From Neoechinorhynchus agilis (taxonomy: Eukaryota; Animalia; Acanthocephala), in contig CM121341.1 of assembly GCA_051530055.1 (NCBI GenBank), forward strand, positions 310,001 to 374,000: a stretch of 64,000 nucleotides of DNA, written 5' to 3'. Positions 5,510-60,210 of this stretch are shown piece by piece. The translations under genes were made by a program, and so were the position numbers. The notes below the pieces were generated by a model. That model made no database searches, had not been told where the DNA came from, and saw nothing but the letters and a program-made list of their open reading frames with translations. Numbering within the stretch: the stretch's first letter is position 1; the number at the start of each line of letters is the position of its first letter.

Positions 5510-5541
<32 letters not shown>

Positions 5542-10835: not shown

Positions 10836-10837
10836 TT

Positions 10838-11923: not shown

Positions 11924-11937
11924 TTTTAGCTCCTGGA

Positions 11938-12774: not shown

Positions 12775-12815
12775 ACTTAGCCGATGTTGAACGCGTCCCG
12801 TTGTAAAATTGAAGA

Positions 12816-17139: not shown

Positions 17140-17171
<32 letters not shown>

Positions 17172-23276: not shown

Positions 23277-23459
23277 AGTGTCGAGTGCCTGTCCACCATA
23301 TGCTTTTAGGCGAAGACCTCTCTAAGCGGTTTAGATCCTAATTGTGTCCAAATCCGCATCGGGATCACCGAGACACCGGCACCCGTGTCATATTCCATCT
23401 CCACTGATCTTGTTGTAGAACCGAAAACGTGGTTTTATTTAGCTAACGGAACCGCGAAA

Positions 23460-28980: not shown

Positions 28981-28982
28981 CC

Positions 28983-30190: not shown

Positions 30191-30499
30191 TGGTCAATAG
30201 TCACAAAAGTTAAAGATAACTAAATTTGCAAGATTCATTAAAATTGGATAACACCATTAAAATCAGCGCGTCAGATATGCTCAAACTGATATATCATTTT
30301 GTTGCCAATTTTAAGAACCATGGAAATAATTCAGGTATCTTATATGAACTAGAATCATAAAACTTAGTGTCAAAATTTAACACGCAACAAGACGCCGTTA
30401 TTGCAGGTGTATTCAGCATCAAAAGTATATCTAGAAAAGTTAATTTGATCTTAAATTTATTGATGTTTTAATATCACTAATCAAGGTTATAAGTCTCAG

Positions 30500-35499: not shown

Positions 35500-35778
35500 C
35501 CTCTTTTGAAGTAGATAGCTATGTTCCGCGTTTGTTCGGCGTATCCAAACGGGCACGCTCGCCTCTCGCTCGGGGATCCGATCAACGTTAAACTGCTGGC
35601 CTAGAACTGGTATGGACAAGGGGAATTTAACTGTTGAATTAAAACAAAGCATTGCGATAGCTGTAATCGTTGTTGACGCAATGTGATTTCTACCCAGTGC
35701 TCTGAATGTTAAAGTGACGAAATTAATTTAAGCGGGGGTAAACGGTGGACGTAACCATGACTTTTCCAAGTAGCCAAA
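35500..35778 (+). rRNA. 28S: 28S fragment forming the 5' flank of R2 copy E
   Basis: AGAACTGGTATGGACAAGGGGAAT...GGTAAACGGTGGACGTAACCATGACTTTTCCAAGTAGCCAAA. Confidence 0.92.
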
Positions 35779-36009
35779 ATTTAGATGATAGGTCATCAGG
35801 TACACCCTCTTCCACCGGGGGCTTGGCGCTTCTTTTAGATTGTGTCAATCAACAACTAACGCGTTAGAGTTCCATCGTGTCCTTCAGGAATTTATAAAGT
35901 GCCCAGTTTGCAAGCCAGATGTGATATGTACCGGAAAAACTAAGGTGAAGCTGATTAACGATCACATTGTATCATCCCACAAGCAGGTTGTGGAATGGAT
36001 GTGTGGCAT

Positions 36010-38535: not shown

Positions 38536-39145
38536 TAGAGTGCATTTTTTCTATTGACCTTCACTACAAGACATGCTCCAGAAAAAATCCGTGAAAGGCA
38601 ACAGCTCTATATGTTGAGGAGACAATCGTAAAGGTGGCCCCTTTAGCAGGAGAAATCGGCTGGGTCATTGCAAACATAGAGCCAGAGGGACCCGTGGTAT
38701 GCCCAGAATGTTACGCCACATTCCACGGGAGTAATCGAACAAAAGTTGTGAAGGACCACCTTATGTACGAACATGGAACAACCTCCGAGTTGTTTCAATG
38801 CCCGGCGTGTTCGGCATACAAGGCAGAAAATTATGCATCAGTGCGTAGCTACATGAACGCCTGCAAGCGGCGGGGAGAAATGGCTTTATCCACGTCTAAA
38901 AACGAAGGAAATGAAAGAAAGGAAAGAAATGAAATAAAGTATTCGTAAGCCGAGCAATCTGTCATCGAGCTGGTTAGCGAGGAGGAATGCGAACCTCCAG
39001 AGTTCCCAACAGAAAAAAGCCCATATTCTGTCCGTTCACTTACCCTTGTAGGAAGCATGGAAGCGCAAGGCCACTTCTTGCCAGAAAATCGTACGCCACA
39101 GTCGAGACGTTGGTGTGAAGGGTGCACCACAATGGCAGACTGTTC

Positions 39146-39296
39146 TGTGACAGGTACTGATGTGGTTGCCATGACGCAACCAATCAATGTTACACACACA
39201 TTGGATAACGGTGTGTTTGGTTGTGTTTGGGCGGGGGTGTGCTGTGTGCAATAAAAAGGTCGTAGATAGTTTGCAGGCATGTCACGAGACGTTACA
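39146..39296 (+). repeat. 5' LTR
   Basis: Differs from 41729-41878 by two substitutions and one indel. Confidence 0.95.
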
Positions 39297-41728
39297 TCTG
39301 GCGACGAGGGTGGGATACCCTTGTTTGTCCAACTCATGCAGCAACAAACGATATTGATGGAAAATATACAAAAGCGCTCCGACGAGTTCATGAAAATAAT
39401 TCGCACGAAATTCGACGGTCAGGCGGCGCTTAGCAGAGAAGCAGACGGAAAATCGAGATCTGGAATATCGATTGTTCCTTTCAGGAGTTTTGAGAAAGGA
39501 GAAGAAAGCTGGACCAATTACCACAAAGAACTAAAGGCCTATTTCTGCTCGGTTGCCGTTTCGGACGAAGAACAAAAAAAGTCACGTATGCTCTCATGGG
39601 TGGGCCCGAGTAGCTTTGATATTATCTCGAAAGCGACACCAACAAGTGTGGAAGAGTTGTCGTACGACGAGGTCGTGAACACATTGGACACTCACAATAG
39701 TGACAAAGTCCACGTGATAACAGCACGATTTCGATTCGTGAACACACGGAGCAGCCAATGGTTGCAATTTTCATGAAAAGGAAATCACCTATGATTCTCA
39801 GGCAATAAAGGAACGGATTCGAGACATGGTCGCAATGTATTCTCCGGACGCGTTTGTGCGTAGAACTGGTCTCTCGGATGGAAATATTGATCTGGACAAA
39901 CTTCTGAGTATAGCTTACAACTTTGAAGAAATGAACGTGGCTCCGACTTTACATATCGAAGCGCCCATCACGAATGTTTGAGAGGAAACGATGGAGAAGG
40001 CGAGCGATACCGTGTCCTGAAAACGAAAAAGCGATTCGTTGCCTTCTCGCCGGATTCCATTTTCACTTCAACCGGCAGTGAAAGCGCAGTTAGAAGAATT
40101 GTGTGATACCGGTGTGTTGGTGAAGGTGGACACAAACGATGATGGAATCGATTGGGCTACCCCGATGGTGATCGTAAGGAAGCCTGCCGGGAAACTGTGA
40201 ATTTGCGCAGATTTCAAGGTTACTATCAATCGATACTTGAGCCCAGAATCGTATCAGATGCCCAGTATCGAAGATATGCTGAATAATATTTCGAACGGTA
40301 AGATATTTTCTAAGCTAGACCTAACAAACGCTTACCTGCAAATCCCAGTAAGTCAATCCTATCAACACTTATTAACAATATCGACGCCGTGGGGATATTT
40401 CCGATACATCAGGTTACCATTCGGCATCTCCAACGCTCCAGCGATTTTTCAGAGTTACATCGATTCCACAATCAAGGACATTAACGGAATCCATGCATAC
40501 ATAGATGACCTGATAATCGTTTCGGATACCGAAGAAGACCATATAAAAAGCTTGAGGCGATTGTTGGAGAGATTTCGTGAAGTTGGACTTACAGTTTCTA
40601 AACAAAAATGCTCGTTTTATACAGATAAGATAGAGTACCTGGGCTTCGTTATAAAGGAAAATTCTATCCGACCATACGAAGAGCGGAAACGAGCCATAAG
40701 AGATGCTCCACGACCAACTACAAAACACAATCTTATATCATGGCACGGGTTGGCAACATACCACTCACGATTTACGCCGCATCTTCAGGACATCTGTAAG
40801 CCTTTACATTATCTAACACGGAAATAGAAGCGATTTGTGTGGACAGAAAAAGAGGAAGATGCGATCCGTAAAGCCAAAGAGATCCTATCAATACCGCAGA
40901 CGCTAGTTCCATATTCACAAGCCAAAGCCCTCGTTTCACCGAAGCAAATTGTTAGCGACAACGGTCCATAATTTATAGCTCCTGCCTTTCGGAAGTTCTG
41001 CATGGACGAATGCATAACACACATCAAGGCAAGTCCGTACCACCGGCAGACAAACGGTTTGGCAAAAAGATTCGTCCAAACATTAAAGGACCGAGTACTG
41101 AAAAGAGGACCGGACCATAGGAATACCAATCTCTGGCGATTCCTGGAAGTCAACCGCAATACACCGCATTCGACCACCGGTAAAAGTCCCTCAGAAGCTA
41201 TAATTCGTCGACGAATACCGACAATTTTCGATATTGGAGGCATGGTCTAAAAAAGTTGGCACGAAGATAGGTCGGACAAATCCAAGGCGCACCACGATCA
41301 AGCTTCCGCGAAGGAAACAAGTTTTGGCATAGGAGTTCCCGTATGGTGAAGGAATATGCAAACTGGAAAATATCAGGAGGCGACAATCGCAAAACGAAAT
41401 GGTCCACTATCCTATGAAGTGGACACCCATATGGGAACGCGTCGAACACATGCAAACAAGATAAGAAAGCGGGAAGAGGCAATCGTAAAGACCGAGCCGA
41501 GAAACCAAGTAGAAAGAACTGCTGAAGAGAAGCATTCGGGGCAAGAAGCAGGGCCAGACGAGAATGAAGAAAGCAAAGAAGCAATCGCCGTAAAAGTAGA
41601 ACAGTAAATTGATGATCAGGAAGTTGAAGCATCTCAAGAATCCAAAGCGCCGATTCTGCGCAGAAGTGTAGGGACGAGAAAACGCCCCACCCTACCGTAT
41701 GATGTCTATTTGCGGAGGGGGTAGAGAA

Positions 41729-41878
41729 TGTGACAGGTACTGATGTGGTTGCCATGACGCAACCAATCGATGTTACACACACATTGGATAACGGTGTGTT
41801 GGTTGTGTTTGGGCGGAGGTGTGCTGTGTGCAATAAAAAGGTCGTAGATAGTTTGCAGGCATGTCACGAGACGTTACA
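41729..41878 (+). repeat. 3' LTR
   Basis: Follows the PPT and is followed by the TSD. Confidence 0.95.
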
Positions 41879-42295
41879 TGTTCAATCGAGTCTACTGTTT
41901 TTACAGTGGTCGAGGCGTATGAAAGCGTTGAAGATGTTCTAAACAAGAGTAACCTCCATCCAAGATACAGAGGTTTTCTTGAGACGGAGCGAGATATCCT
42001 CCGTAAATCGTTAGGTCCCATTAATGGTGAATTTGTCGATGCGGCGGCTATGCGATATGCTCAGTACTTGCGATGTGGTCGGAGTAACGAAGTGCCTCGA
42101 GTCTCTAACGCGAGAGAAGTAGGGCTTAAGATCATTAAACTGAGGAAAGGCCCGACTCAGGCTCTCTCCGCTATTGCCTACCACGTACTGGGTAATCCTT
42201 CATTGTGGAAGAAGGTAGCTACGAAAGTAACAATGGAGGTTCAAAACAACAAGGAATAATATGCGCAAGTTGCACAGAACGTCTCTGACGCCAAT

Positions 42296-43891
42296 GTGCC
42301 TCTGGAAGTCCACCTTGGAGGTCTTCTAAAGAATAGTGTAGTATCTCCTTTGTTTGTTTTGTTCGCTGCTGCCGCAGCATACTCAAGTGATTTCTCGGTC
42401 CATTCGCCTTTCGAACGACAAGTGCGTCGAATCTTTTGTCCCGGAATTGGAACACACGCTTACAACGTGTGGATCGACGAATCCGGCATCTATCCATGTG
42501 TTAGATGTCGCGGTATTACGAGATACCAAGACCGTGAGCTTAAGAAGAGACGAAATCGTGCCCTGTATTTTGCCAACACCTCGAAGCTTGCAGCTGAGGT
42601 GTTTAAAAATGCAGAGAGGAGAGAATGTCATCTGAATCCGAAAGAAACAGTTGAACATTATCGTCGTTTATTTGAAGGAAACGTCCAACCTGCGAGTCTG
42701 CCAAAAAGTACTGTTGCAAATGAACAGCAGTCTCCAGAGGAACGTTGGCCGGTCATCACAACGGTGGAAGCCGAAGATGCCCTCAAAAGCATCAAGCCTT
42801 CAAGCGCATCGGGTCCGGATAAGATAACGGTTCGAGATGTTCGAGCCTTCGATCCGTTACTTCTGGGTATGACGTTGCTCTTTAACTTCGTCATGCAACA
42901 CGGAGGGCCGCCACAATTGTGGAATGAGTCCAAAACTATCTTGTTGCCCAAATCAAGCGCGTCACCGGAGAAGCTGCAAACTCAGGGCGGTTGGAGACCG
43001 ATTACGATCTCCTCCATTTTGATGCGTGTCTTGCACCGCATCATTCTAAAGCGGCTTCGAAGAGTATGCTTTCTGGACGCTGGACAAACGGCGTTTGACC
43101 CGTCGGCCTGTATGGCTAACCTACTCACTCTTCGGAGTGTTGTTAGAGAAAAGCGGGCAAACAGGAAACCTCTTGCAGTAGCTGTGCTCGACATAAAGAG
43201 TGCCTTCGACACTGTTTCACATGCTGCAATAGAGGAGTCACTTCGTAAAATAGGGTGTCCTCACTATCTGCAAAGATACGTGATGAGCTCTTACTGCGAC
43301 AGCAGTACGAAGATCCGTATGCCCAACGCCAGACCGTCAGACCCTATTAGCTTCCGGAGAGGAGTAAAGCAAGGGGATCCCCTCTCCCCCCTGCTATTCG
43401 CGCTGTGTGTAGACGAGGCACTGCAGGAAGTTCGAAGACTTGATTTAGGTGTTCAGCTTAAAGGGAACGTTCGTCTGTCGCATCTTGTATACGCAGATGA
43501 CGTTCTCCTGATGGCTGATAACTACGATAATCTACAAAAAATGATTGACACACTGCGGGGCAAGCTCAGAGAGAAGGACCTTATACTGAGTGCAGAAAAG
43601 TGTCAGACATATAGGCATGCCTATAGGTGCAACAAAATGATTATCGATAGAGAATCGTCGGTAGAGATCGAAGGGGTGTTGCTGACAGCAATTAAGGAAG
43701 GGGACCCGGTGAAATACCTAGGTGGTACTCCCTGGAAAGAGACCACTCTAGATGAAGGACTGGCGTTGTTAGGCACCCTATTTGAAGCGACAAAACGGGT
43801 ACAACTCTCACCGACTCAGGCCGCCCACCTGCTGAACGACTATGCAGTGCCATCCCTGGTGGCTAGACTCGAAGCCTCCTGGGACATATAG
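42296..43891 (+). pseudogene. R2 copy E reverse transcriptase; reading frame broken by stops at ~42257 and 43889
   Basis: SGPDKI, WRPITISSILMRVLHRI, LDIKSAFDTVSH, GVKQGDPLSPLLF, YADD, KYLG. Confidence 0.92.
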
Positions 43892-43948
43892 TCTACCAAT
43901 CTTAGGCGTATCGACGAGCAGTGGAGGTCAAAGCTGAAGAAGCTCCTT

Positions 43949-44947
43949 ATGCTGCCAAGGAATCTCAGCGAAGGTGCATTCAATCTACCGCTTTCAAAAG
44001 GTGGACTAGGGTTCCGATCTCTTGTCCACGAAGTAGAAACTACGAGGCTCCGAGCCGTGAGAGCGGTCATTGACAAGTTTGGCTGCGCCATTGACCTTCA
44101 CAAAGAGATCGGCCAATTAACGGACTACTTCGGCAAAATGGGTGATAAGCGTGAGCTGCATCAAATCTCTCCAAAGAAAGCCTTTATTGACCATCGCATA
44201 AAAACATGGAGAGAGGCGATAACGCAATCGCAAGGGTTTGAATGTTTCACGAATGGTTTGGTGGATCGCAGTCTGATAAAGTTTCGTTATCGCCAAGACC
44301 GTCACCATTCGTACGTGGAGCATGTTAAACTAAGATTCCAATTGCTGGAGGTCGGTTCTGTTTTGAGCCGAATGGACCATCAGCGCGGTAGAGCATGTAG
44401 GCATTGTACTGCACCGGTTGAATCATGTGCTCACGTACTCAATGGATGTGATTACACTTCTTCCGCAATGACCCGACGCCATGACAAGGTGCAGTCGCGC
44501 CTTGTGTGGACGTTAGCGAAGAGACCTGGAGCGCATTATGAGTGTAGGGAACAGAACCGATTTCATAACGAAAAAGGTGACTTGTTCAAACCCGACCTCA
44601 TTTTGAGCGACAGGAACTCAGGGAAGGTGTATATTGCGGACGTTGCAGTCTACTACGAGACAGGTGAAGACCGCGCGGAAGCCGTCATGAAGGGTAAAGA
44701 GGATAAATACGCATCCATTGTTCCGATAGTTGCGAGAGAACTGAATGTACATGAGCATAAAGTCTCCACTATCGGTCTTGCAGTGGGATCGCGTGGTACT
44801 TATAGCAACTCTTTACTTCGCCGCCTGAAGCTTCTCTCAATAGGTCAGCGAACAGCGCTGAACATGGCTAGAACTGCTGCCGAGCAATCCCTTATGGTTT
44901 TCCATGTTTTTTCGGGCAGACGGTGGTGCCAGAGGCAACAGCTCTGA
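43949..44947 (+). CDS. R2 copy E C-terminal zinc knuckle and restriction-like endonuclease
   Basis: LPLSKGGLG, CRHC..ESCAHVLNGC, RHD, KPDLI..D, K..KY. Confidence 0.92.
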   Translation: MLPRNLSEGAFNLPLSKGGLGFRSLVHEVETTRLRAVRAVIDKFGCAIDLHKEIGQLTDYFGKMGDKRELHQISPKKAFIDHRIKTWREAITQSQGFECFTNGLVDRSLIKFRYRQDRHHSYVEHVKLRFQLLEVGSVLSRMDHQRGRACRHCTAPVESCAHVLNGCDYTSSAMTRRHDKVQSRLVWTLAKRPGAHYECREQNRFHNEKGDLFKPDLILSDRNSGKVYIADVAVYYETGEDRAEAVMKGKEDKYASIVPIVARELNVHEHKVSTIGLAVGSRGTYSNSLLRRLKLLSIGQRTALNMARTAAEQSLMVFHVFSGRRWCQRQQL

Positions 44948-45177
44948 AAACGTGGAGACTGTATGGATAGTTGCTTCCAGTGGAACTGCAACAATGAAGG
45001 GTTCCAAAACGAATAAATGGACAACAGCTAAAACAATTGAAAGGAAAACAACAGAAGGGCACCTTTAATAAAAAGAGGGGTGTATCGACACTTGAAGAAG
45101 TGAAGAAAAAGGAAAGACTTATCGTGAAATTAAGTAACATTATATTGTAACTGTTATTTGCGTAATAAATACGTCTC

Positions 45178-45209
<32 letters not shown>

Positions 45210-45322
45210 TGCATGAATGGATTATTGAGATTCCTACTGTCCCTGTCTGCAGCCTAGCGAAACCACAGTCAAGGGAACGGGCTTGGAGAGTAACAGCGGG
45301 GAAAGAAGACCCTGTTGAGCTT
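45178..45322 (+). rRNA. 28S: 28S segment, +1 to +145 downstream of the R2 site
   Basis: TAGCCAAATGCCTCGTCATCTAATTAGTGACGTGCATGAATGG...GGGGAAAGAAGACCCTGTTGAGCTT. Confidence 0.95.
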
Positions 45323-45405
45323 AGCCTTTTGCATCAACAGCTGCTATAACCACTACAACAACAATAATATACAATGTCGATCCAGATGGGGCCCTTAAGT
45401 GTTCT

Positions 45406-48390
45406 ATGTGCAAAATTGCGGCCATTGGAAAGACAAAATTTCGCTTATTTAACGAACATCTGGCAAAAGTTCACGGAATTACTGGTCTTGTATGGCGGTG
45501 CCCGATATGTACAAAGTATGAACACTGTGAACATCGTAGCATGTCCGTTCATCTGAGAAAGTGCCAATCGAATTATCCTGACAAGTACCGATTTCTACTC
45601 GATGATATATGCAAATCAAGTGTTCACATTAATGTTTTTGCTAGTCAATCGTCCGTGTTGTACATACCCGGCGATGACAAACCAATTGAATGTTTGCTTT
45701 GCGACTACTCTGTGATTGGAACTGGGAAGTTCAATTCGATGGAACATCACTTAACCTCGATTCACAGAGTGACGGACTGCCGATTTCGATGCGGATTGTG
45801 TCTCGCAAATTTTGGAACTCTACCTCAAGTACGTAGTCATTACAATCATTGCCGAACGAATATGGGGAATAGCAGCTCTAATGGTCCTATGGAGTCAAAA
45901 GAAAAGCTCGATGGCACTAGTACTGATATTCATCACTCAATGATTGACAAAGCGGATTACAGTAGCAAGTCAAATGGTGCATCCGATTTTCCTAGCGAGC
46001 CAAAAACAAATTATAACGACGCGAGCGATATCGAATCTGTTTATTCTACTCAAACACGAGATGAGAATTTATGTCTCAATAATCCGAATCGTAAAAGTCG
46101 GAACAGCGTTCTGCAAAATGAATACAGAACCGATGCAAGTGCTACAGCTACATTCGTTAATGGGCATATTGAATTACCTACCTCGTCGTTCCGGCCTACA
46201 AACGATCACACCGAACGAAATGAATTGCCTACCTCAACGCTCCGGTCTACGTACGACCATGTTGAACGGATGGTATTGTGTACCCCTTCGCAACGTCGTG
46301 CGGACGACCATGTTATAAATATCGAATTGTCTACCTCATCACACCAGCCTACGTATGATTACGTTGAGCAAACGGATAGGTCTACCTCATATAACCGGCC
46401 TTCAACTGCAGAATATTCTCAGAATGTAAACGATATCACAGATAAATTGGAAACGCATCATGGTATCAACCCTAATGATTTAAATGATAATGCCCAAAAC
46501 TGTTCTCAAATCGAAGTCGCCTACCCTCTTGAATCGGAAAAGCCCCTCGAATGTCCAATTTGTTCTTTGAATGTTGTTGGAAAGACAAGACACCGGATTT
46601 TTCTTAATCATTTGGAAAAAGTTCACAATAAGTTATCAGTCTCCTGGATATGCCAACTTTGTAAATCCTTTAGTAGTGAAGTTCCGGGGAGTGTCGGCTC
46701 TCATTATCGACGGTGCAAGGCTGTAAAGGTTAAAGAGTACAAGGAATTACTAGCGAGCAGTACAAAAGATGCTGTTCTTAAGAAAACAAATTCCACAGTT
46801 GAAATCGTGTATACCGGAAACGAATTTCCAGCACTTTGTTCGCTCTGCCAGATTTGCTATCTTGGTCAAGGACAGTGGAACGAGATCGAGCGGCACATTC
46901 GTTCTGATCATGGCAGCACGCGCGTTTTGTTTCTATGTGGCAATTGCAAAGTTGAATCCTCGGAAAACTCATTTAGCGCCCGATCGCATCTCACGCAATG
47001 CACGAAAAGGCTTCGGTTTTCAGAGAATACACAACATGCTAAAAAGGAAGATTCTCGTACACCTATTGACGAAAACTCATTTGCCTCGGATCACCTGCGA
47101 AACAACCTCAATATTAACTTCCCTATCACCGAACCAGACATCCCTACTTCTACAATAGCTGTGAACGAGGTTGAATATGGTACGTGCACTACCGCGAGTC
47201 AAATCAGTGTACCCCGCGAAGTACTATACGAAGCATGCAACAACGAACATCAGCCCTTATCTTCATTCGACGGTCTTGACAATATACAGGAAACCATCAC
47301 AAACTATCTTCCCTCGGAACCTCTGTGCGCAAGTCACGAGCCTCTTCAAGCTGTGGAAAAGGACAACGAGGAACTTCAGCATACACGCGCAATCTCAGAA
47401 GCTCCAGTTTCTACCCCACAGTTTTTTTTCGAAACCCCTGGGGACTGTCCTAGTAACAACAACCTTCACGCGCGACGGTCTATTGAACACTTTTCAACAA
47501 CAGAAGGACTGAGTGCAGGAGAATTCTCGACGCAAGAAGCCTTCGAATTCTTCAGCCAACCGCTTCAAAGACAAGATCTTCATCCTCGGTATCGGGAATT
47601 TCTAGAACAGGCGAGCTCAGCAATGCGTGAAATTGACGGACCTATTTCAAAAGACGTAATCGACGATATGTTAAATCGATACGTCACGTATCTTAAATGC
47701 GGACGGATTTCTAACAAAGAGGCTGCGCCGATGTCAATCGCACGATACCGTGGTCTCAAAATCATTAAGCTCAGAAAGTCCTCAACGATGACTATGGCTA
47801 CTGTCGCATTCCATGTTTTTAAAAATCCAACAATGTGGCGGAAAGTACAATCCACAATGGCCAACGAAATGAACTATCAGAGCATGCTATTTGAGCGAAT
47901 CGCAACAAACGTCGATGATGCAAACGCCAGTCTTTTTGACTTGATGAGCGCACTCAAACAAAATCGTGAGTTATCATCTGAGTTTATACTGTATAGTGCA
48001 GCTTCAGCGTTCAAATGCGACTTTGTTGTACACAAGCCAACATCTGACAAACCAAAACGAATACGCTCCCACCTGGTTACTAACAAATCTTATAATGTCT
48101 GGATAGACGAATCGGGCTGCTATCCATGCGAGAGGTCACGAGCGCTCAATGTTCAGCAATCCCGCCAATTAACTCGCCGACGATACCGCGCGATGTATTT
48201 CAATAATACGAGTCGACTTGCGAACTTAGTATTTAATGACAATACTGCCAATCAGATGAATACTTTCGCAAAACTTTTCAAGGCAACTCGGAACTTGCTG
48301 CTACCCCAAATGACTATAGAGAATCAAGTAACGTGCCCAAATCGGAACTATGGCCAGCGGCTACGGTCGAAGAAATCAGAGCAGCAATAA
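45406..48390 (+). CDS. R2 copy F N-terminal region: 2 x (CCHH-CCHC-CCHH-CCHC) fingers, S/T-rich linkers, OTU-like domain, pre-RT region
   Basis: Finger cassettes at ~45400-45852 and ~46552-47001; the frame is open from 45325 with no upstream ATG. Confidence 0.85.
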   Translation: MCKIAAIGKTKFRLFNEHLAKVHGITGLVWRCPICTKYEHCEHRSMSVHLRKCQSNYPDKYRFLLDDICKSSVHINVFASQSSVLYIPGDDKPIECLLCDYSVIGTGKFNSMEHHLTSIHRVTDCRFRCGLCLANFGTLPQVRSHYNHCRTNMGNSSSNGPMESKEKLDGTSTDIHHSMIDKADYSSKSNGASDFPSEPKTNYNDASDIESVYSTQTRDENLCLNNPNRKSRNSVLQNEYRTDASATATFVNGHIELPTSSFRPTNDHTERNELPTSTLRSTYDHVERMVLCTPSQRRADDHVINIELSTSSHQPTYDYVEQTDRSTSYNRPSTAEYSQNVNDITDKLETHHGINPNDLNDNAQNCSQIEVAYPLESEKPLECPICSLNVVGKTRHRIFLNHLEKVHNKLSVSWICQLCKSFSSEVPGSVGSHYRRCKAVKVKEYKELLASSTKDAVLKKTNSTVEIVYTGNEFPALCSLCQICYLGQGQWNEIERHIRSDHGSTRVLFLCGNCKVESSENSFSARSHLTQCTKRLRFSENTQHAKKEDSRTPIDENSFASDHLRNNLNINFPITEPDIPTSTIAVNEVEYGTCTTASQISVPREVLYEACNNEHQPLSSFDGLDNIQETITNYLPSEPLCASHEPLQAVEKDNEELQHTRAISEAPVSTPQFFFETPGDCPSNNNLHARRSIEHFSTTEGLSAGEFSTQEAFEFFSQPLQRQDLHPRYREFLEQASSAMREIDGPISKDVIDDMLNRYVTYLKCGRISNKEAAPMSIARYRGLKIIKLRKSSTMTMATVAFHVFKNPTMWRKVQSTMANEMNYQSMLFERIATNVDDANASLFDLMSALKQNRELSSEFILYSAASAFKCDFVVHKPTSDKPKRIRSHLVTNKSYNVWIDESGCYPCERSRALNVQQSRQLTRRRYRAMYFNNTSRLANLVFNDNTANQMNTFAKLFKATRNLLLPQMTIENQVTCPNRNYGQRLRSKKSEQQ

Positions 48391-48887
48391 AGGGTATAAA
48401 GTCGAACAGCGCATTGGGTCCAGATAAAGTATCTATTCGAGAAATTCTCGCGTTCGACAGAGATCTTATTGGATTGACGACCTTGATAAATTCAATCATC
48501 AGTGTTGGAATACCACCAACTGAGTTGCTCGAGTATAAGACAATTCTTCTGCCCAAAAATGGTAAAGATAGCACAGCCCTAAAATCAGTCGTAAATTGGA
48601 GGCCAATAACAATCTCCTCAGTTATTTTGAGGATCTAACACCGTCTTATTTTAGCAAGGCTTCGAAAGGAAATGAAACTACATAGCAGTCAAACAGCGTT
48701 CGAAAGCGCCGCCTGCAATTCTAATCTCCTCCTACTAAGGACGCTCATTAAGCAAAAGCGACAAGATAAGAAACCCCTCGCACTGGCCGTCCTGGACATC
48801 AAATCAGCATTTGACACGGTTAGTCACAAAACCATAAGCTAAGCGCTAATCGAACATGGTTGTCCACAATACTTACGGCAGTATCTG

Positions 48888-50543
48888 ATGGACGTGTTCT
48901 CGTCTTCACATACCCGGCTCCATCTTCCCAACTCAAGACCATCAGAACCTATCCACTTTCGTCGAGGAGTGAAACAAGGTGACCCACTGTCGCCGTTCAT
49001 CTTTGCTTTGTGCATCGATAAAGCGCTACAAAAAGTCAGCGATTTAGGCCTCGGGACCTCAATAAGAACCTGCCGTTTAAGTCAGCTGGTGTACGCGGAC
49101 GACATCCTACTAACGTCTGACAGTACCGACGACCTTCAAATTATGCTAGATTGTATCAACACGGAGCTGAACGATATTGGCCTATCGCTCTCCGCCGGAA
49201 AATGCCGAACGTACAATCACACATTCAAAAACAGCAAATTAGAAATCAATACTCGGCCAAAAGTACAGATAAAAGAACAACTAATTGAGATAATAGTCGA
49301 CGGTGACCCTGTTACGTACTTAGGCGGAACACCTTGGAAAGAGACAGACATGCAGCTTGTTACAAATGAATTGGATAAGCTCTTCAAGTGCACTAAAGAT
49401 GCAGGATTGAGCCCGACACAAGCTGCACACCTCATAAACGATTACGGGCTTCCGCGCCTTGTTTCGCGAATTCAAGCCGCTCATGATATATCGATTACAA
49501 CGCTCGACGCGATAGAACAGCAGTGGAGAACAAAACTAAAGAAACTTCTATATCTTCCCCTTTCGTTAAACGACGGAGTAATTTTCCTTCCCCTGAGTAA
49601 AGGCGGACTTGGATTCAATTCAATAAAACAATCCGTCATGGCATCGAGAATGAAGAGCTTCCGTGAGGCCAAATTGAGAATCCCCGAACTGGAGCTATTG
49701 GACAAAAATTTTGGAAAAGTTATAAAATACTGCACGGAAATCGGGGCTGCAAACCTAAGCGAAAGGAAGTGCGACATCCACAAAGCGCATGAGATTGACA
49801 ATATCTTAAAATGGCGAAAAGCGGTGACCCAATCACAAGGGATCGAGTGCTTCACCGCTGGCACAATTGATCGAAGTCTCATTTCATTTCGGTACAGAAA
49901 AGATCACCATAAAAATTACACCGAAAAAGTCAAAATGCGACTTCAACTACTAGAGGTTGGAGCGACTTTAGCGAAGTATGACCAAGAAAGAACAAAACGG
50001 TGTCGCCACTGTTCAGCTCCGGTCGAATCACAACTTCATGTCTTAAATGACTGCCCACACAATACGGGCATGATGACAGAACGCCATGATGCCGTTCAAA
50101 AACGTTTCATCTGGGCTCTACAGAAACGAGGAGGCTCTCGGTGGGAACTGCACACCGATAACCGTATCCACGATCCAGGTGGTCAGCTGTACAAACCCGA
50201 CCTTATCATAATAGATAAGCAGAAAAACGAAGCCCTCATTACAGACTTTGCTGTCTATTATGAAACCGATAGGGATCGCCCAGAAGCAGTGATGCAACAC
50301 AAGGAAATAAAGTACGCAACAATCAAAGGAAAGGTAGCTGAGCAACACGCAATCCCGATATATAACGTCAAAACAATAGGCATTGCGGTTGGATCAAGAG
50401 GTTCATACTCTAACGAGCTGCTCAAACGATTGCGAACTTTCGGACTATCATACAAAACAGCGATCAACATGGCAAGAACAGCGCACGACAAGTCGATCAA
50501 ATTGTTTCATACATTCATGGGTCGTCGATGGACGCTGCGATAG
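48888..50543 (+). CDS. R2 copy F RT C-half, zinc knuckle and endonuclease
   Basis: GVKQGDPLSPFIF, YADDILL, YLGG, CRHCSAPVESQLHVLNDC, ERHD, YKPDLII. Confidence 0.92.
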   Translation: MDVFSSSHTRLHLPNSRPSEPIHFRRGVKQGDPLSPFIFALCIDKALQKVSDLGLGTSIRTCRLSQLVYADDILLTSDSTDDLQIMLDCINTELNDIGLSLSAGKCRTYNHTFKNSKLEINTRPKVQIKEQLIEIIVDGDPVTYLGGTPWKETDMQLVTNELDKLFKCTKDAGLSPTQAAHLINDYGLPRLVSRIQAAHDISITTLDAIEQQWRTKLKKLLYLPLSLNDGVIFLPLSKGGLGFNSIKQSVMASRMKSFREAKLRIPELELLDKNFGKVIKYCTEIGAANLSERKCDIHKAHEIDNILKWRKAVTQSQGIECFTAGTIDRSLISFRYRKDHHKNYTEKVKMRLQLLEVGATLAKYDQERTKRCRHCSAPVESQLHVLNDCPHNTGMMTERHDAVQKRFIWALQKRGGSRWELHTDNRIHDPGGQLYKPDLIIIDKQKNEALITDFAVYYETDRDRPEAVMQHKEIKYATIKGKVAEQHAIPIYNVKTIGIAVGSRGSYSNELLKRLRTFGLSYKTAINMARTAHDKSIKLFHTFMGRRWTLR

Positions 50544-52078: not shown

Positions 52079-55000
52079 ATTGTATTGTATTGTATGCAAC
52101 GGTACCTTCCTACGTTGCACCGTAGGTATAAGCCCGTCAAATAGAATTAGACTCCGCGAGGGATCTAAAATACACGACAGCAGTCCTGTTATGCGGGCAA
52201 TTCGCGTCTCTTAAAATCAGGTCATCATATGTACGACAGTTTCCTTTGCCTTTACGATACAATGTCGTTGGCTTCCAGAAAAGGAACTGTTGCACGACCT
52301 GTGGGCAAGATGCCTCGGGCCGAATTATATTGCCCGGCAACTGCAGTCGTCTGCGGCGCAAATATTCACTGCGCGGTTGGACTCCGGCTCTCATATACAG
52401 TGCTTTGTTGGTCACTTTATCTGACCATCTGACCTTGAACGCCGCACGTAAGAGAAATGAATGATTTTAGTCCAACTGCCTCGTCGCCGTTGGTAACAGT
52501 GTCCAGGTCTCTGCAATGTAGTAGACAATGCTCTCAATTAGAGTCCTGAACAGCTGCGAACGGAGTTCATCTGGCAAAGACTCACTGTCAAACAGTGGCT
52601 TAAGTTGCCCCATCGCTCTCCAAGCTATAGCTCTCCGTCGGCTGACATCCGCACTCACCGCAGGAACGACAGTTCCCAGATAGACATACCGCTCTATCTG
52701 TTTTAATTGCTCAACGCCATTCGGCCCTTCGCCAGAGACTGCATGCGCGACATGCGGAATCGTCAAGAATTCCGTCTTTTTCGAGTTGATCGTCATACCA
52801 ATCATACTCGCCCTCTCGCACAGTCTATTTAGCATGCGTTGAGCTCCTTCGACTGTTGAGGACATCAATACGGTGTCGTCGGCATATGCCATGTAGGAGG
52901 CGCGTATCTCAGGATACCTGCGACCTCTTTCCCTCAACAGAAGAAATCCATCTTCATCATTCGGTAGTGCCCATCTCATTACCCAATCAAGCACCAAGAT
53001 GAAGAGGAAAGGAGCCAATGTGTCGCCCTGCAAAACACTTGAATTGGTGGAAAAGTATTCCGTCAAACCATCAGCTGTCTTGACGGCGGACCTTGTGTTA
53101 TTTTATAATGCCATAGCGGATGTGACAATGATCGGCGGCACTCCATACTCCTTTAAGATACCGCCAATCATCGTTCGATTTGCCGAATCGAAAGCTCGAC
53201 GGAAATCAACAAATACCAGCGTTACATCCGTTTGATGAATTCGTGCCTCCTCGAGGATCCTCCTCAAAGCCAATATGTGCTCTGTGGTGCCTCGCCCTTT
53301 CCTGAAGCCGTTCTGTTCAATTCTTAGAAACGGTTCGAGGATTGGCTGAATTCGGCGTCTCAAAATGCTGCCGAAAAGTTTTGCCGTGTTGGACATCAAA
53401 GATATATCTCTGTAGTCCTCCACCTTTGTCGAACAGCATTTCTTGGGGATCATTGTTAAATGCGCCTTTTGCCAGATTTGAGGTACTGAGCCACCATTCA
53501 TTATGCCATTCATTATCGGTATGATCTTTCCGGCAATAGATTCAAACCTCAGTACCTCTGCCATTATCCCACCTGGGCCTGATGCACGTCCCGCACGCAT
53601 CATTTTCGCCGCAGCGATCGCTTCCTTCACGGAAATCGGTCCAGTGAAGTATGCCTCAGTGCAAGGGACGATTGTGCCTTTTGGAAGTGCAGGATTCACT
53701 TCCAAAGACGATAATGGCGAATTGAGAATTTCCGCAAAATAATTTGCGATTCTCTTTTTTTCTGATTTCCGGGGAGGGACGTTCAATCAAAGTTGGCTGT
53801 CTTTGGGGTCTTCCTGTGATAATGTTTATCGCTCTCCATGCCAAGGAGGTACGAACAAAACCTTCCTTATATGCGATCCCACGAACTGCATCCTCTGTCG
53901 AAGCCTTTTGCTTTTCATTATAGAGGTTGGCAAGTTCAAGACTTGTAATGGGAGCCTCAGATCGTTTTCCTCTTTTTCTTAGAGTTTTGATCTGCTCAGC
54001 CATTGCCATAAATTCACAGTCCTCCTGCCATCTTTTATACGCCTCATTTTTGGGAGGGTTTTCTCGGCCGCTTCGGTCACTGCGTCGCGGATTGACTTGT
54101 AATAAAAATCAATATCCGTTTCAGCAGCTGGCATCGAGCTCAGTTGATTCTCTAGTTCGATATCGACCTCTTTCCTCTTCTCCTCATTAGCGAGGGCGCC
54201 ATAGAACGGACGTGGAGGATGTTGAGGCGTACGGAACAACGAGTCTCTCATGCTCAAATGACACATCACCAACTTGTGGTCAGTTGGCAGCCCATCAACT
54301 GTGAATGTGTCAGCGTTTTTGACCCGACATTTTTCCCTACGTCTCAACAATATATGGTCAAGCTGAGCTAAGCGTCTCATGGGATTTTTTCCCATGACAT
54401 GTTTGGACCGATTCTTTTAACCCATAAACGACGCAAAAACGCCACGGACGCTTCCGGAATAAAGTGTTAGCAGACACGAGATCATGTCGCTCCAGCGCCT
54501 CAACGAAGTACCGGCTGTTCCGATTCTCGCCTTTCAACACATATTGCGATCTTTCGGAATGCGGTAAAATTGCGTTGAAGTCACCGGCTATTAGGAGGGT
54601 GTCTCTGTTCGGTACATTATCTAATGCTTCGGCTAGATTTCCATAAAATCCTTCAACCGCCTCTTCATCCGACGAGAAGGTCAGTGAATATACGCCAAAA
54701 GCATAGAGATTTCTCGACCGAAGCTTTATGCTGACACGAAGGATTCGGTCAGTTATAGTACTGCATAGTGCCGAGTTTCGGAGGCGGGGTGATAAACAAA
54801 CGCCTACACCTCTATTTCCTCGACTGCCCGCAGATAGGTAAGATAATGAACAGCCTCCTCCTAAACCCTCCTGGTTTACGTCTGTGTCTGACTGGCCGCT
54901 TATGCGCAATTCTTGTAAAAACACAAGATCCATTCTGGCGTCCCTTGCCAATTTGGCCAGGGTTTCCCTACACCATTGCGCTCGCAGACTCCTACAATTC

Positions 55001-55320
55001 AAGGATCCGATTCGTAATTCTCTCCTATCTAAAATAGCTGGGTCAAAGGGCTTACGGCTGTCAGCACCACCTGAACAGTCCGTACCCAACACGGTGATGA
55101 GCTTCAACTGACGCTTTCGTTGCCTCCGGCGACAGTTTCGCTCATTTCGACGCTCAAGTCGTCGGCGAGAGCTACGACGCCCTCGCTTTTTCCGTTGCAC
55201 TGGAATATTTAGTTGCTCCCGTTCGCTGCCGCATCGCCAAGTGGAGCGGCACACCGACCCCGCACAGCTGTCTGGCCGCCGGAGTTGCTTCTTTGACGTG
55301 ACCGACAAGAATCAGTAACA
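52079..55320 (-). mobile_element. RTE-clade LINE, near full length but frameshifted
   Basis: APE GSLNCRSL..LQE..GVG..AGDFNA; RT QNGFRKGRGT, VDFRRAFDS, VLQGDTLAPFLF, YADD, YLG; (CAATA)3 tail at ~52080-52095. Confidence 0.9.
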
Positions 55321-56099: not shown

Positions 56100-57290
56100 C
56101 GACGTCGCGTTATCAAAACGTCCAAAAAAAGATCGCATTATGATTCTCCGTCTACTGTCCATTGAATGTTGCTGTGCTTTTAATTCCGTACGTGGGCGAA
56201 CTTTTCCGGTTCTGTGATTTCATCGAGTAAGATAAAAGTGCCATCTACGTTTCTCGACCGGAACTTCACACCAGGTAGGCTTGAAACGTTCCTAGCCTCC
56301 CATTCGCGCATGAACAATTCGGTTAGAACTGGGGCAAGTGGACTCCCCATGGACAGTCCATCTACTTGATCATAGCTCTCGCCTTCGAAGTTTGACATCA
56401 GCAAAAATCATTCTATATTCTGCACATGCGAGCGCCTTCAATCTCCCTGTGAACACCACACCTGATGACACGGTGTGCTCATCCGGAGGCACTAAGCTTC
56501 TTAACATGGTAGCAAATATCAAGCTGTTTACGTATCATATGCAGAATGCGATGCAATAATTGGCCGAGCCTTTAGTGGGGATTTATGTACTTTTGCCAAT
56601 AAGTACATGTTAGGTGTAAGTCCGTTGTTGGAACGATGTTTTTTGTATATTTGTTCGTCTATACTTCCATGCTTCTTTAGTGCAAGTACATATTGGTCGA
56701 ACATATTTTCTCGTTTTGTAGTGGGGCATATATTATTAGATCGAAACTCTGGAACCGATAAGATATGCGCGGCAATTCTATGGTAGTGTTCTTCATCTTA
56801 ATTATGATGGTGAACTGAAGGAAAAAATTATGAATATATTAATCAGAATTTTCGACCAATGCGTTGGTCTTCTTCAGTACAGTTAGTGTAAAACTTACAA
56901 ACAATTATTGAAGAAGACCAATGCATTGGTCGAAAATTCTGATTAATATATTTATAATTTTTTCCTTCAGTTCACCATCATAATTAATTCCTAAATGAAT
57001 ATCTACACAATGTTCTTCATCTACAATACAGAAACCTCTGCCTTTGTCCAACTTCATGATACGTATCTCCTCAATTCGATTAAGATTATTCATCGCTAAG
57101 ATCAGTCGTTGGGGCAAGTTAGTACGTTTAATTCTGTTTCCTTTATGTAGCAATGCTTCTACTTTCCATAATGGAATTGTGATTCCGGTAAATTTGGCCT
57201 TGGATATCATCTTCTCCATTTCTAGGGTTAATCCCATGTTGTTGAGTTTGCTACGAATAAAATAAATTCGATTTGCGACACGAGCAGACT
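56100..57290 (-). mobile_element. Second Penelope-like element, decayed and rearranged with a fold-back; partial repeat at 58290-58790
   Basis: YDQVDGLSMGSPLAP..RNVDG (56180-56404) and IMKLDKGRGF (56905-57237). Confidence 0.75.
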
Positions 57291-57299
57291 AAGCCATAA

Positions 57300-60210
57300 T
57301 ATGTCGGGCGATAAATCTCATTGTGTTTTGGGTTTTAACCTAAAAAAATCTCGTATGCGAACTGTGCCAGATCCCAATTAATTCGAAGAAACGACGTTTT
57401 AACGTATTTTCAACAATTAAGCAAAAATTTTGTAATTCTACGCTAATTTTCTTTTTATAACAACTTCACAACGCCTTGAAAGTCCTTCGATATTTGCAAT
57501 CGAGCTTAAAAACTTGATAAATCACATTGCGTTTTTGATTTTAACAAAAAAAATCTCGTATGCGAATTGTGCCAGATCCCAATTAATTCGAAGAAACGGC
57601 GTTTTAATGTATTTTCAACAATTAAGCAAAAATTTTGTAATTCTACCCTAATTTTCTTTTTATAACAACTTCCCAGCGCATTGAAAGATCTTCGGTATTT
57701 GCAATCGAGCTTAAAAACTTGATAAATCACACTGTGTTTTGGGTTTTAACCTAAAAAAATCTCGTATGCGAACTGTGCCAGATCCCAATTAATTCGAAGA
57801 TACGACGTTTTAACGTATTTTCAACAATTAAGCAAAAATTTTGTAATTCTAAGCTAATTTTCTTTTTATAACAACTTCACAACGCCTTGAAAGTCCTTCG
57901 ATATTTGCAATCGAGCTTAAAAACTTGATAAATCACATTGCGTTTTTGATTTTAACAAAAAAAATCTCGTATGCGAATTGTGCCAGATCCCAATTAATTC
58001 GAAGAAACGGCGTTTTAATGTATTTTCAACAATTAAGCAAAAATTTTGTAATTCTACCCTAATTTTCTTTTTATAACAACTTCCCAACGCATTGCAAAAA
58101 ACCTTCGGTATTTGCAATCGAGCTTAAAAACTTGATAAATCACATTGTATTTTTGGTTTTAACCACAACAACATCTCATATGCGAACGCGATCCAATAAT
58201 TCGTAGAGACGTTTTAATGTTTTTTCCAATAAGTAAAAATTTTGTAATTCTAACAATTTTCTTTTTATACACAACTTCCACGCCATGAAAGTACATATTT
58301 GTCGAACATAATTCTCTTTTGTATTTGGGCAATATTATACAACGAAACTCTAACGATAAGAAATCGCCAATTCTATCGTAGTATTCTTCATTTTAATTAT
58401 GTGGTCAACTTAAGAAAAAATTTTGATATATTAATCAGAATTTTCGACCAATGCTTGTCTTCTTCAGAACAGTTAGTGTAAAACTTACAACAATTTTTGA
58501 AGAAGACCAATGCATTGGTCGAAAATTCTGATTAATATATTTATAATTTTTTCCCAGCACCATCATAATTAATTCCTAAATGAATATCTTATACAATGTT
58601 CTTCATCTATAATACAGAAACTTCGCTTCGTCCAACTTCATGATACGTATCTCCTCAATTCGATTAAGAACCCAAATCCCAAATACGTTAACGTTATACC
58701 ATAAGAATATTGTAAATTTGCTTAGATATATCTTCTCCATTTCAACTAATCTCATGTTATTGAGTTCGCCACGAATAAAATTCCTTCGATTTGCAATCGA
58801 GCTTAAAAACTTCGATAAATCACATTGTGTTTTGGGTTCTAACCAAAAAAAATCTCGTATGCGAATTGTGCCAGATCTCAATTAATTCGAAGAAACGACG
58901 TTTTAATGTATTTTCAACAATAAAGCTAAAATTTTGTAATTCTACGCTAATTTTCTTTTTATAACAACTTCACAACGCCTTGAAAGTCCTTCGATATTTG
59001 CAATCGAGCTTAAAAACTTGATAAATCACATTGCGTTTTTGGATTTTAATTACAAAAAATATATCGTATGCGAATTGTGCCAGATCCCAATTAATTCGTA
59101 AAAACGACGTTTTAATGTATTTTCAACAATAAAGCTAAAATTTTGTAATTCTACGCCAATTTTTTTTATAACAACTTCACAACGCCTAGAAAGTCCTTCG
59201 ATATTTGCAATCGAGCTTAAAAACTTGATAAATCACATTGTGTTTTGGGTTCTAACCAAAAAAAATCTCGTATGCGAATTGTGCCAGATCCCAATTAATT
59301 CGAAGAAACGACGTTTTAATGTATTTTCAACAATTAAGCAAAAATTTTGTAATTCTACACCAATTTTCTTTTTATAACAACTTCCCAACGCCATGAAAGT
59401 CCTTCGATATTTGCAATCGAGCTTAAAAACTTGATAAATCACATTGTTTTTTGGATTTTAATTACAAAAAATATATCGTATGCGAATTGTGCCAGATCCC
59501 AATTAATTCGTAAAAACGACGTTTTAATGTATTTTCAACAATAAAGCAAAAATTTTGTAATTCTACGCCAATTTCTTTTTATAACAACTTCACAACGCCT
59601 AGAAAGTCCTTCGATATTTGCAATCGAGCTTAAAAACTTGATAAATCACATTGCGTTTTGGGTTCTAACCAAAAAAAATCTCGTATGCGAATTGTGCCAG
59701 ATCCCAATTGCCGTAGGCCCGATGGAATTTCGGTCTTCCCGTGGCGGCAGGGCAAATGCCTTCTCTGGGACGCCACGTCCCTCGCAGCCAGTAACATCCG
59801 CTACTCCCTCGAAATCGCCGGTGGTGCCGCCAGTGCAGCGGAAGGGAGGAAAATTCCCCTTTGGGGTAGAGACGTATGGAGCGCTCGGCACTCTGCTCCA
59901 GGATCTCTCGAAGAAATTGAGAAAGGCAACCGGAGACTCAAGAGCAGGCGTATTCCTTCGACAAAATATCTCGCTGGCAGTACAACGAGGCAATGCTGCC
60001 AGCGTGATGGCGACGGTCGAGGAAGGACAAAAGCTGGAATTTGGCGGGAGGTGGTGTTTTAATTGTCGAGAGATGAAGATTGATTGAAATAAAAACTAAT
60101 CAAGATTTTCAACAATTAAGCAAAAATTTTGTAATTCTACGCTAATTTTGTTTTTATAACAACTTCCCCACGAATGTAAAGACCATTGAAATTTGCAGTC
60201 GAGCTTAAGA
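57300..60210. repeat. ~206-bp satellite with alternating A/B units, interrupted at 58290-58790 and 59710-60088
   Basis: ATCACATT recurs at 57521, 57726, 57932 and 58139 (spacing 205-207); alternate units share diagnostic bases. Confidence 0.95.
59710..60088 (+). mobile_element. 5'-truncated CRE-clade copy inserted in the satellite
   Basis: Very similar to 10090-10485; RRPDGISVFPWRQGKCLLWDAT; same 3' end GAAGATTGATTGAA. Confidence 0.9.

Follow-up and report, generated by a model that had tools for sequence, protein, structure and literature searches.

A predicted OTU-fold domain stripped of its catalytic residues in R2 retrotransposons of Acanthocephala

R2 copies of the window and their 28S junctions

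The window considered here, a whole stretch of 64,000 nucleotides from the acanthocephalan Neoechinorhynchus agilis (GCA_051530055.1, contig CM121341.1, positions 310,001 to 374,000, forward strand), lies at or inside a decayed part of a ribosomal DNA (rDNA) array. It harbors six copies, A to F, of R2 retrotransposons whose proteins carry, shortly before the reverse transcriptase (RT), a block with the predicted fold of OTU deubiquitinases (DUBs). From the N-terminus onwards, proteins of this type comprise two to four tandem C2H2+CCHC zinc-finger pairs and a linker of variable, low-complexity sequence, which lead to a conserved helical region of ~65 aa and an OTU-fold core of ~145 aa. About 10 residues past the core comes motif -1 of the N-terminal extension (NTE), followed by the RT, a CCHC knuckle and a restriction-like endonuclease (RLE). 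Feature coordinates are collected in Table 1.

A tblastn search with the block of copy F recovered exactly the six places at which the earlier note had located a block upstream of the RT, and the six-way alignment and translations displayed it as collinear; the copy F peptide quoted in that note was also correct. Amino acid identity among the six copies was 27-55 % and blastn detected only A, D and E among them; to judge from their sequences, the copies are old and diverged and not recent duplicates. All six were inactivated by stops, frameshifts or truncation. In copy F, for instance, the reading frame shifts near 48330-48390 and is interrupted by in-frame stops at 48636 and 48840; an exact-sequence look-up of its open reading frame (ORF) returned no database record. 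Between E and F (tblastn), the block was 41 % identical and the RT-RLE part 50 %, while a stretch of roughly 170 aa between zinc fingers and block gave no high-scoring segment pair.

Ratios of nonsynonymous to synonymous substitutions (dN/dS, Nei-Gojobori method), calculated over about 90 codons of the block for the three closest copies, were 0.11 (A-E), 0.39 (A-D) and 0.26 (E-D). These values were reached despite part of the divergence being neutral after copy death, which indicates purifying selection on the block in active elements. More than 20 copies from two species have the block in frame within their R2 ORF, and a host OTU pseudogene was ruled out on these grounds.

Table 1. Positions of R2 copies, rDNA and other features in the window
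Feature	Positions	Strand	Remarks
Copy A block	5010-5369	+	tblastn, E=4.7e-18
Copy A OTU-fold core	5061-5381	+	C-terminally truncated
Copy D block	16288-15893	-	tblastn, E 9e-21
Copy D OTU-fold core	15914-16297	-	N-terminally degenerate; one stop
Copy B 3' junction	17152-17171	-	28S TAGCCAAATGCCTCGTCATC directly past B 3' UTR; canonical R2 site
Copy B block	18755-18158	-	tblastn, E 6e-38; one frameshift
Copy B OTU-fold core	18212-18602	-	SPTI in Cys loop; frameshift and stop near 18368
Copy C block	25503-25069	-	tblastn, E 1e-35
Copy C OTU-fold core	25054-25347	-	NSTM in Cys loop; C-terminally truncated
Degenerate 28S gene body	30499-31372	+	upstream of R2 site; host gene of E/F insertions
Copy E pre-OTU helical region	41900-42082	+	
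Copy E block	41975-42571	+	tblastn, E 2.3e-48
Copy E OTU-fold core	42083-42517	+	GPTQ in Cys loop; one in-frame stop
Copy E motif -1, RT, CCHC, RLE	42542-44947	+	to ORF stop
Copy E CCHC	44396-44449	+	
Copy E RLE	44585-44611	+	
Copy E 3' UTR	44948-45177	+	ends ...TAATAAATACGTCTC at canonical R2 3' junction
28S rDNA	45178-45325	+	+1 to +148 downstream of R2 site (TAGCCAAATGCCTCG ... GACCCTGTTGAGCTT)
R2 copy F	45326-50543	+	5' junction to ORF stop
Copy F zinc-finger array	45400-47001	+	four tandem C2H2+CCHC pairs, eight fingers; motif scan
Copy F pre-OTU helical region	47518-47712	+	F[ST]xxEAxE ... LHPRYRxFLE ... RYxxYLxCGR; low-confidence helices
Copy F block	47599-48201	+	tblastn query
Copy F OTU-fold core	47713-48147	+	145 aa; AlphaFold2, Foldseek, hhalign, alignment columns
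Copy F RT N-terminal extension motif -1 (RRRYRAMYFNNTSRLANLVF)	48175-48234	+	9 residues past modelled OTU-fold core
Copy F RT, CCHC and RLE	48330-50543	+	motif 0 at 48408, YADD at 49086
Copy F CCHC knuckle	50001-50054	+	
Copy F RLE motif KPDLII	50190-50216	+	
Penelope-like element	11351-13757	-	RT (PF00078), then GIY-YIG endonuclease domain; adjacent ORFs
LTR-retrotransposon/retrovirus-like pol pieces	20376-24688	-	two integrase-core ORFs and RT; between R2 copies B and C
Satellite-like tandem array	28218-30188		period about 91-92 bp; 85-87 % identity
APE-type LINE	52467-55308	-	Exo_endo_phos endonuclease ORF, then RT; unrelated to R2 copies
Satellite-like tandem array	56681-59709		period about 206 bp; 88-97 % identity
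Sel1-repeat ORF	62644-63444	+	PF08238, E 5e-22
UTR, untranslated region; LTR, long terminal repeat; APE, apurinic-endonuclease-like; LINE, long interspersed element.

The elements are R2 by RT homology, C-terminal domains and target site. In a phmmer search of PDB with the full-length homologue P0003, the top three matches were avian R2 proteins (9dou, E 1.9e-24; 9nl3, 2.6e-24; 9nl2, 4.6e-23), and the alignment with R2Tg started at motif -1, immediately past the block. The best non-acanthocephalan relatives of the copy E RT were R2 elements of birds, fish, coelacanth and arthropods, with 29-34 % identity. Copies E and F both displayed the C-terminal motifs CRHC(S/T)APVES..HVLN.C and (Y/F)KPDLI, CCHC knuckle and RLE being recognised by motif. 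Membership in the NeSL or Utopia elements was ruled out, since the fold is OTU and not Ulp1 and the flanks are 28S rDNA.

Junctions at the R2 site (a slash marks the insertion point) were assessed at 3' ends. The 3' UTR of copy E ends with ...TAATAAATACGTCTC at 45177/45178 and is followed by 28S TAGCCAAATGCCTCGTCATCTAATTAGTGACG...; the 3' junctions of E and B both fall at .../TAGCCAAATGCCTCGTCATC, the canonical R2 site as defined by the conserved 28S sequence ...TTAAGG/TAGCCAAATGCC.... Two further copies with different 3' UTR tails share this junction at a comparison locus of 21 kb from the same species (L002; GCA_051530055.1, CM121341.1:109253-130308). In the window and L002 taken together, five independent 3' junctions were counted at the canonical site, these four among them. 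Both the rDNA targeting and the R2 affiliation proposed in the earlier note were thereby borne out. An intact, uninserted R2 site was searched for in the window and was not found.

Copy F does not lie at the R2 site; it starts in 28S at +148 bp downstream (GACCCTGTTGAGCTT/). Both 28S copies of L002 (12983-13215 and 5255-5512) run uninterrupted past this position (GACTCTAGTC...), so that copy F represents an insertion at +148 whose empty site is documented. Based on this single insertion, +148 may be a second target site of an F-type subfamily, as in the case of R9, or may have been hit only once by chance. The 3' junction of copy F (28S beyond +148) was searched for in the window and was not found.

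The rDNA around the copies is split between the two strands. The minus strand holds a complete small subunit (SSU) gene (1775-3631), the 5.8S gene (1267-1422) and the first 920 nt of the large subunit (LSU) gene. The degenerate 28S body on the plus strand corresponds to positions 1493-2254 of the Rfam LSU model, and further short 28S pieces at 45178-45286 correspond to positions 2280-2388. An apparently intact start of an rDNA unit (SSU, 5.8S and the 5' part of LSU; window 1-3631, minus strand) thus stands against an R2-riddled 28S pseudogene (30499-31372 and 45178-45325, plus strand), and their opposite orientation suggests an array edge or an inverted segment of dead rDNA. The rDNA pieces of L002 were 93-98 % identical to those of the window, reaching 98.3 % over the 5.8S/internal transcribed spacer stretch (window 722-1417).

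Fold and active site of the block

AlphaFold2, run on a 19-row core alignment with sequences from two species, modelled the core with a pLDDT of 93.1 and a pTM of 0.87, all five models being at 89.7 or above; the predicted order is one β-strand, five helices and four strands. Only OTU domains were encountered among the 50 PDB matches listed by Foldseek, 17 of them at E <= 0.001. The best match was OTUD3 (4bou; E 1.9e-7, TM 0.77/0.79, 142 columns), and others were DUBA/OTUD5 (3tmp, E 7e-7), OTUD1, OTUD2, yeast Otu1 and Otu2 and nairovirus OTUs. A 7-row model built from window-derived rows reached a pLDDT of 61 only; OTU domains were again its top Foldseek matches but were non-significant, and this model was not relied on. 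Foldseek against BFVD retrieved OTU-fold proteins as well. The best viral matches to the model were baculovirus VP80/P87 capsid proteins, in their N-terminal regions, and an iridovirus virion core protein. As far as predicted structures go, this hints that other OTU folds, too, may have been put to use in DNA-associated proteins without enzymatic function.

Homology was also detected at profile level. The block profile aligned with an OTUD5-family profile in hhalign (Prob 90.9 %, E 1.2e-6, 108 columns), the latter being composed of 23 sequences gathered from an approximate starting query 95-98 % identical to database OTUD5. The block of protein P0015 from Pomphorhynchus laevis matched Pfam PF02338 in the same register (E 0.054, profile positions 8-93 of 128). 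The OTU likeness first recognised from residue spacing was therefore recovered by structure comparison and by profile alignment: the models show an OTU fold for the block, and the hhalign result points to profile-level homology to OTU deubiquitinases. Other sequence searches were silent: Pfam found nothing relevant, OTU included, on the 994-aa N-terminal ORF of copy F, phmmer or hmmsearch against PDB sequences gave nothing for copy F or for a profile made from the window alone, hmmsearch with the block profiles yielding coiled-coil noise only, and a word-index protein search with the copy F block gave no match.

When 1.84 billion representative proteins were searched exhaustively with the profile, 15 matches were obtained, 13 of which were real and displayed the same layout. 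Ten of these 13 were looked up by exact sequence: nine had NCBI names, all 'hypothetical protein', and the tenth came from an unannotated sequencing-run contig. The named proteins belonged to N. agilis (Eoacanthocephala) and P. laevis (Palaeacanthocephala), and among the proteins searched the block was shown to be restricted to Acanthocephala, in two of its classes.

The residues required for OTU catalysis were missing. The register is set at the Cys loop, where hhalign pairs LRK-S-S-T-M of copy F with MKE-D-G-A-C of OTUD5 and agrees with Pfam. The Cys-loop equivalent of copy F, SSTM (47779-47790), has Met in the position of the nucleophile, as has that of copy C; the residue in this position is Gln in A and E, and Ile in B. 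Over 17 aligned rows the column contains M, Q, I, K or L, with Q, M and Q in three more copies from L002, and the Asp of the DGxC motif is replaced by S, G, N, W or V. The substitution of the DGxC loop by GPTQ, SSTM, SPTI or NSTM, as read in the earlier note, was thus reproduced with no Cys in the column, and so was the loss of the catalytic His, as no conserved His was found in any column of the block alignment. Around the His position, strands were paired by their order (DFVVH with PVEVYQY, RIR with INTF, SYNVWID with IRVSYH and GCYPCER with IHYNSVV), which places GCYPCER of copy F (48115-48135) on the His strand; in this register the His column contains C, I, L, A or T and is followed by an invariant Pro-Cys. 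An hhalign alignment forced through the C-terminal strands gave a zero-confidence register (S/A/V/C) and was dropped for strand topology; His was found in neither. Judged from these alignments, all copies encountered in the two species encode the domain as a pseudoenzyme.

The strongest conservation of the dead domain was encountered outside the old active site. A DAN motif (copy F 47917-47925) lies in a 6-residue insertion relative to OTUD5; other conserved positions are NP after helix 1, AA.A..DF, and the invariant Pro-Cys at His+2/+3 followed by x-Arg (PCER, copy F 48127-48138). DAN and PCER occupy columns 70-72 and 143-146 of alignment A3. Together with NP and AA.A..DF, they are candidates for a functional surface or for structural residues.

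Activity as a protease or hydrolase through non-canonical residues, such as the invariant Cys of the PC motif or a Ser/Thr of the Cys loop, is barely conceivable. This Cys is present in 13 out of 13 sequences, three residues past the His position, and the loop residues that precede the Cys position are often Ser or Thr. Nothing, however, is conserved at or beside the nucleophile position (the -1 column displays T, R, S, K, N, H or D), no conserved His or Asp/Asn partner was found, and the Cys at His+3 should face away from the cleft by β-strand alternation. Transposon OTUs thought to be active, on the other hand, keep all catalytic residues.

The N-terminal interval and the proposed role of the OTU-fold core

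Published R2 proteins have the order (ZnF3:2)-ZnF1-Myb-Spacer-NTE-RT, ZnF standing for zinc finger, with a variable Spacer; their N-terminal domains lie on DNA upstream of the nick and NTE -1 lies on the 3' UTR RNA (PMC12180492). Myb has been termed the hallmark of R2 and serves to distinguish it from Utopia (PMC13188248; PMC13580325). The acanthocephalan fingers come as C2H2+CCHC pairs spaced by about 8 residues, two to four per protein, which resemble the co-folded ZnF3:2 pair of lineage A R2 and align weakly to R2Tg residues 232-285. Further zinc fingers of the window lie at 35900-35985, 38676-38924 and 19901-19450 (minus strand).

A CCHH ZnF1 past the last CCHC was not found by motif scan in F, P0003, P0007 or P0015. 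For Myb, Pfam gave no match on the 994-aa N-terminal ORF of copy F, a regular expression that finds Myb in three R2 proteins retrieved nothing in six frames of the window, and hhalign of the pre-OTU region against the Myb domains of three R2 proteins gave a Prob of 0.6 %. ZnF1 and Myb thus appear to be absent at the level of sequence. The earlier note had placed the OTU-like domain where Myb should be and had seen no Myb pattern. The absence of Myb stood; the placement needed amendment, because the whole ZnF1-Myb-Spacer segment is replaced and a ~65-aa helical region precedes the OTU core, the two apparently filling this interval together. The helical region was conserved in both acanthocephalan species and had no detectable relatives; fragments of it were also found at 5640-5700 and 17090-17030 (minus strand).

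Cutting across the other readings, the OTU core could be an addition and not a replacement, that is, an extra insert in the Spacer behind a cryptic, diverged Myb-like three-helix unit in the pre-OTU region. This region is conserved and predicted helical, and its 'F[ST]xEE' and '(L)HPR' loosely recall 'W[ST]xEE' and 'FP.RT' of R2 Myb. Such a unit is nevertheless quite unlikely: besides the negative Pfam, motif and hhalign results, the two motifs are about 19 aa apart as compared with 35-40 in R2 Myb, and the universal ZnF1 that precedes Myb is missing too.

The core is basic. Full-length cores displayed isoelectric points (pI) of 9.1-9.7 and net charges of +5 to +9, as compared with a median pI of 5.9 and a net charge of -4 in cores of the OTUD5 family. 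The 11-residue stretch that runs up to and includes the Cys position counted 52 K/R vs 2 D/E (14 sequences), and that of the OTUD5 alignment 25 K/R vs 36 D/E (23 rows). In active OTUs the cleft holds the Arg-rich C-terminal tail of ubiquitin; this reversal of cleft charge therefore argues against a kept binding of the ubiquitin tail and is compatible with contacts to a phosphate backbone.

It seems moderately probable that the dead OTU-fold domain is an integral, selected part of the acanthocephalan R2 ORF, kept as a probable nucleic-acid-binding module. Binding of nucleic acid by the OTU-fold core itself is predicted with slightly less than even confidence. An ancestor of these elements would, plausibly, have gained an OTU domain from a host gene or from a gene of another mobile element, the acquired domain would then have lost catalysis, and it would have been retained as a binding module. 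As the core is fused directly upstream of NTE -1, it is predicted to lie near the upstream target DNA and the 3' UTR RNA. Its most likely contact beside NTE -1 would be a nucleic acid, the candidates being the 28S target DNA on the upstream side and the 3' UTR RNA of the element. The core would then assume some functions of the absent ZnF1-Myb-Spacer in target-primed reverse transcription. It is more doubtful, and suggested here only tentatively, that an R2 lineage devoid of ZnF1-Myb finds 28S through multiplied ZnF3:2-like pairs together with an exapted dead OTU domain binding DNA, RNA or both.

Several points weigh against this interpretation. PF02338 was matched in hmmscan by only one of the 19 members, with 14.4 bits vs a cut-off of 23.3, and the register of the His strand derives from strand topology, without a confident alignment. 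The positive charge suggests nucleic-acid binding as a prediction only, and the core of P. laevis P0015 is near neutral (pI 7.9). The absence of Myb rests on sequence tests, R2 Myb being divergent and the hhalign control consisting of three Myb sequences, and a cryptic DNA-binding unit of three helices may lie in the pre-OTU region. No intact copy was found in the window, which thus displays no sign of current activity of the family.

The same features bear on two alternatives in which the core binds protein or nothing at all. As a pseudo-deubiquitinase reading ubiquitin or ubiquitin-like proteins, it might dock the R2 ribonucleoprotein to chromatin or repair factors at rDNA that are ubiquitinated or bear SUMO- or ISG-like modifications, or shield the protein from degradation. 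Catalytically dead binders with a DUB fold are known, the OTU fold is predicted at high confidence with an intact helical arm, and OTU or other DUB domains carried by Ginger1, Helentrons and some algal and dinoflagellate ORF2p suggest a link between transposition and ubiquitin. This alternative is unlikely, given that the cleft for the basic LRLRGG tail is itself strongly basic, that the overall pI is high and that the DAN insertion lies in the helical part of the block.

A purely architectural role is very unlikely. The core would here replace the usually disordered Spacer and, without any ligand, pack on the RT core or NTE and position the zinc-finger array. Its end about 10 residues before motif -1 fits such a role, and the turtle R2 Spacer contacts the RT core and NTE 0, Spacer swaps damaging insertion in cells (PMC12180492). 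Polar or charged positions of surface type (LRK, NP, DAN, PC.R) are kept across two classes, however, beyond the needs of a passive spacer, and a strong net positive charge is unexpected in a packing domain.

Surroundings of the copies and comparison with known elements

The insertion block containing copy E (about 35.8-45.2 kb) greatly exceeds F in length. Nested insertions or duplications must be present in it, such as 39146-39297, which equals 41729-41879 at 98 %. A 28S piece is duplicated (31130-31371 vs 35514-35755, 94 % identical). The second piece is followed by a heavily mutated stretch resembling the R2 site (35757-35800; catgacttttccaagtagccaaaattt), and then by the 5' part of an R2, in which a zinc finger lies at 35900. 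An inverted duplication of 588 bp with 99.7 % identity (5389-5975 vs 17293-16706) extends from the last part of the B 3' UTR over 33 bp of 28S into copy D, whose start is 5'-truncated, and is a recent rearrangement within the decayed array.

The rest of the window is a transposon graveyard (Table 1). The Sel1-repeat ORF possibly belongs to a host gene that borders the repeat-rich region. Both strands of a hairpin at 10836-10967 match plant microRNA-precursor models at 68.7 bits vs a gathering score of 150; this is most likely a palindromic repeat resembling miniature inverted-repeat transposable elements and not a microRNA, and related sequence was found at 34062-34232. In a Logan contig from another sequencing run (ERR13848439; L001, 2054-2707), an ORF of 217 aa adjoins a degenerate R2 copy with an OTU block. 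It displays a precomputed Pfam match to the Mononegavirales L polymerase and a GDNQ motif, and could be an endogenous viral fragment or the sign of a chimeric contig.

With lineage A R2 (avian R2Tg; 9dou, 9nl3), the acanthocephalan elements share a single ORF, a homologous RT with NTE -1/0, CCHC and RLE, the canonical 28S site, and the C2H2+CCHC spacing pattern of ZnF3:2. They differ in having no detectable ZnF1 or Myb, the latter a hallmark according to PMC13188248, in a finger pair repeated two to four times, in a folded OTU-like domain and a helical region where Myb and Spacer lie, and, for copy F, in the position at +148. R8 from Hydra and R9 from a bdelloid rotifer are R2-derived rDNA lineages with changed insertion sites (PMC5035012), R9 coming from Syndermata, the clade that includes Acanthocephala; unlike these, most copies here are at the canonical R2 site. 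No rotifer or cnidarian protein with the OTU block was found in the profile search of 1.84 billion representatives.

Similarity to OTUD3, OTUD5/DUBA, OTUD1 and OTUD2 lies in the predicted fold and the order of secondary structures (β-α5-β4; TM 0.6-0.79), and in profile homology to the OTUD subfamily with collinear Cys loop, helix 1 and helical arm. In contrast to these enzymes, the block has lost Cys, His and the Asp that belongs to DGxC, is basic where they are acidic, displays the DAN insertion and resides inside a retrotransposon ORF. NeSL-1 and Utopia-1_TSP, early-branching RLE elements, also have a domain of papain-like protease fold (clan CA/CE) N-terminal to the RT (PMC4640811). Theirs, found in a different clade, is of the Ulp1/C48 type and is described as a protease domain resembling cellular Ulp1, with spliced-leader or U2 targets, whereas here the fold is OTU/C85 and the catalytic residues are gone.

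OTU domains were reported in Ginger1 transposases and Helentrons (PMC2836005, PMC4067079), and a 2026 preprint describes fusions of Josephin and OTU DUBs with ORF2p of algae and dinoflagellates. As in Ginger1, Helentrons and dinoflagellate ORF2p, an OTU domain would have been captured independently by a mobile element. Those elements are, however, DNA transposons or APE-type or unclassified LINEs with OTUs matching Pfam PF02338, none being in R2, and the OTU domains of Helentrons reportedly retain every residue needed for function.

In the open literature (Repbase and subscription journals were outside the search), no report was found of R2 with an OTU domain, be it active or dead, nor of R2 in Acanthocephala, a phylum unlisted in the 2016 (PMC5035012) and 2026 (PMC13188248) surveys. 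These surveys and a 2026 review mention neither an R2 OTU domain nor an acanthocephalan R2. An R2 architecture with a pseudo-deubiquitinase in place of the N-terminal module thus appears to be undescribed, and the finding extends R2 to Acanthocephala.

R2 serves as the reference in work on target-primed reverse transcription, and its engineering for site-specific gene insertion is under way. Use of the same 28S site with a different N-terminal solution would mean that the ZnF1-Myb module, treated as the defining device of target recognition, is replaceable, and would offer a natural alternative R2 architecture to study or borrow. For the biology of pseudoenzymes, it would be a clear example of a selfish element in which selection has maintained a DUB fold whose catalytic dyad is entirely lost. 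If nucleic-acid binding holds true, this would be the first deubiquitinase fold turned into a nucleic-acid-binding module of a reverse-transcriptase machine.

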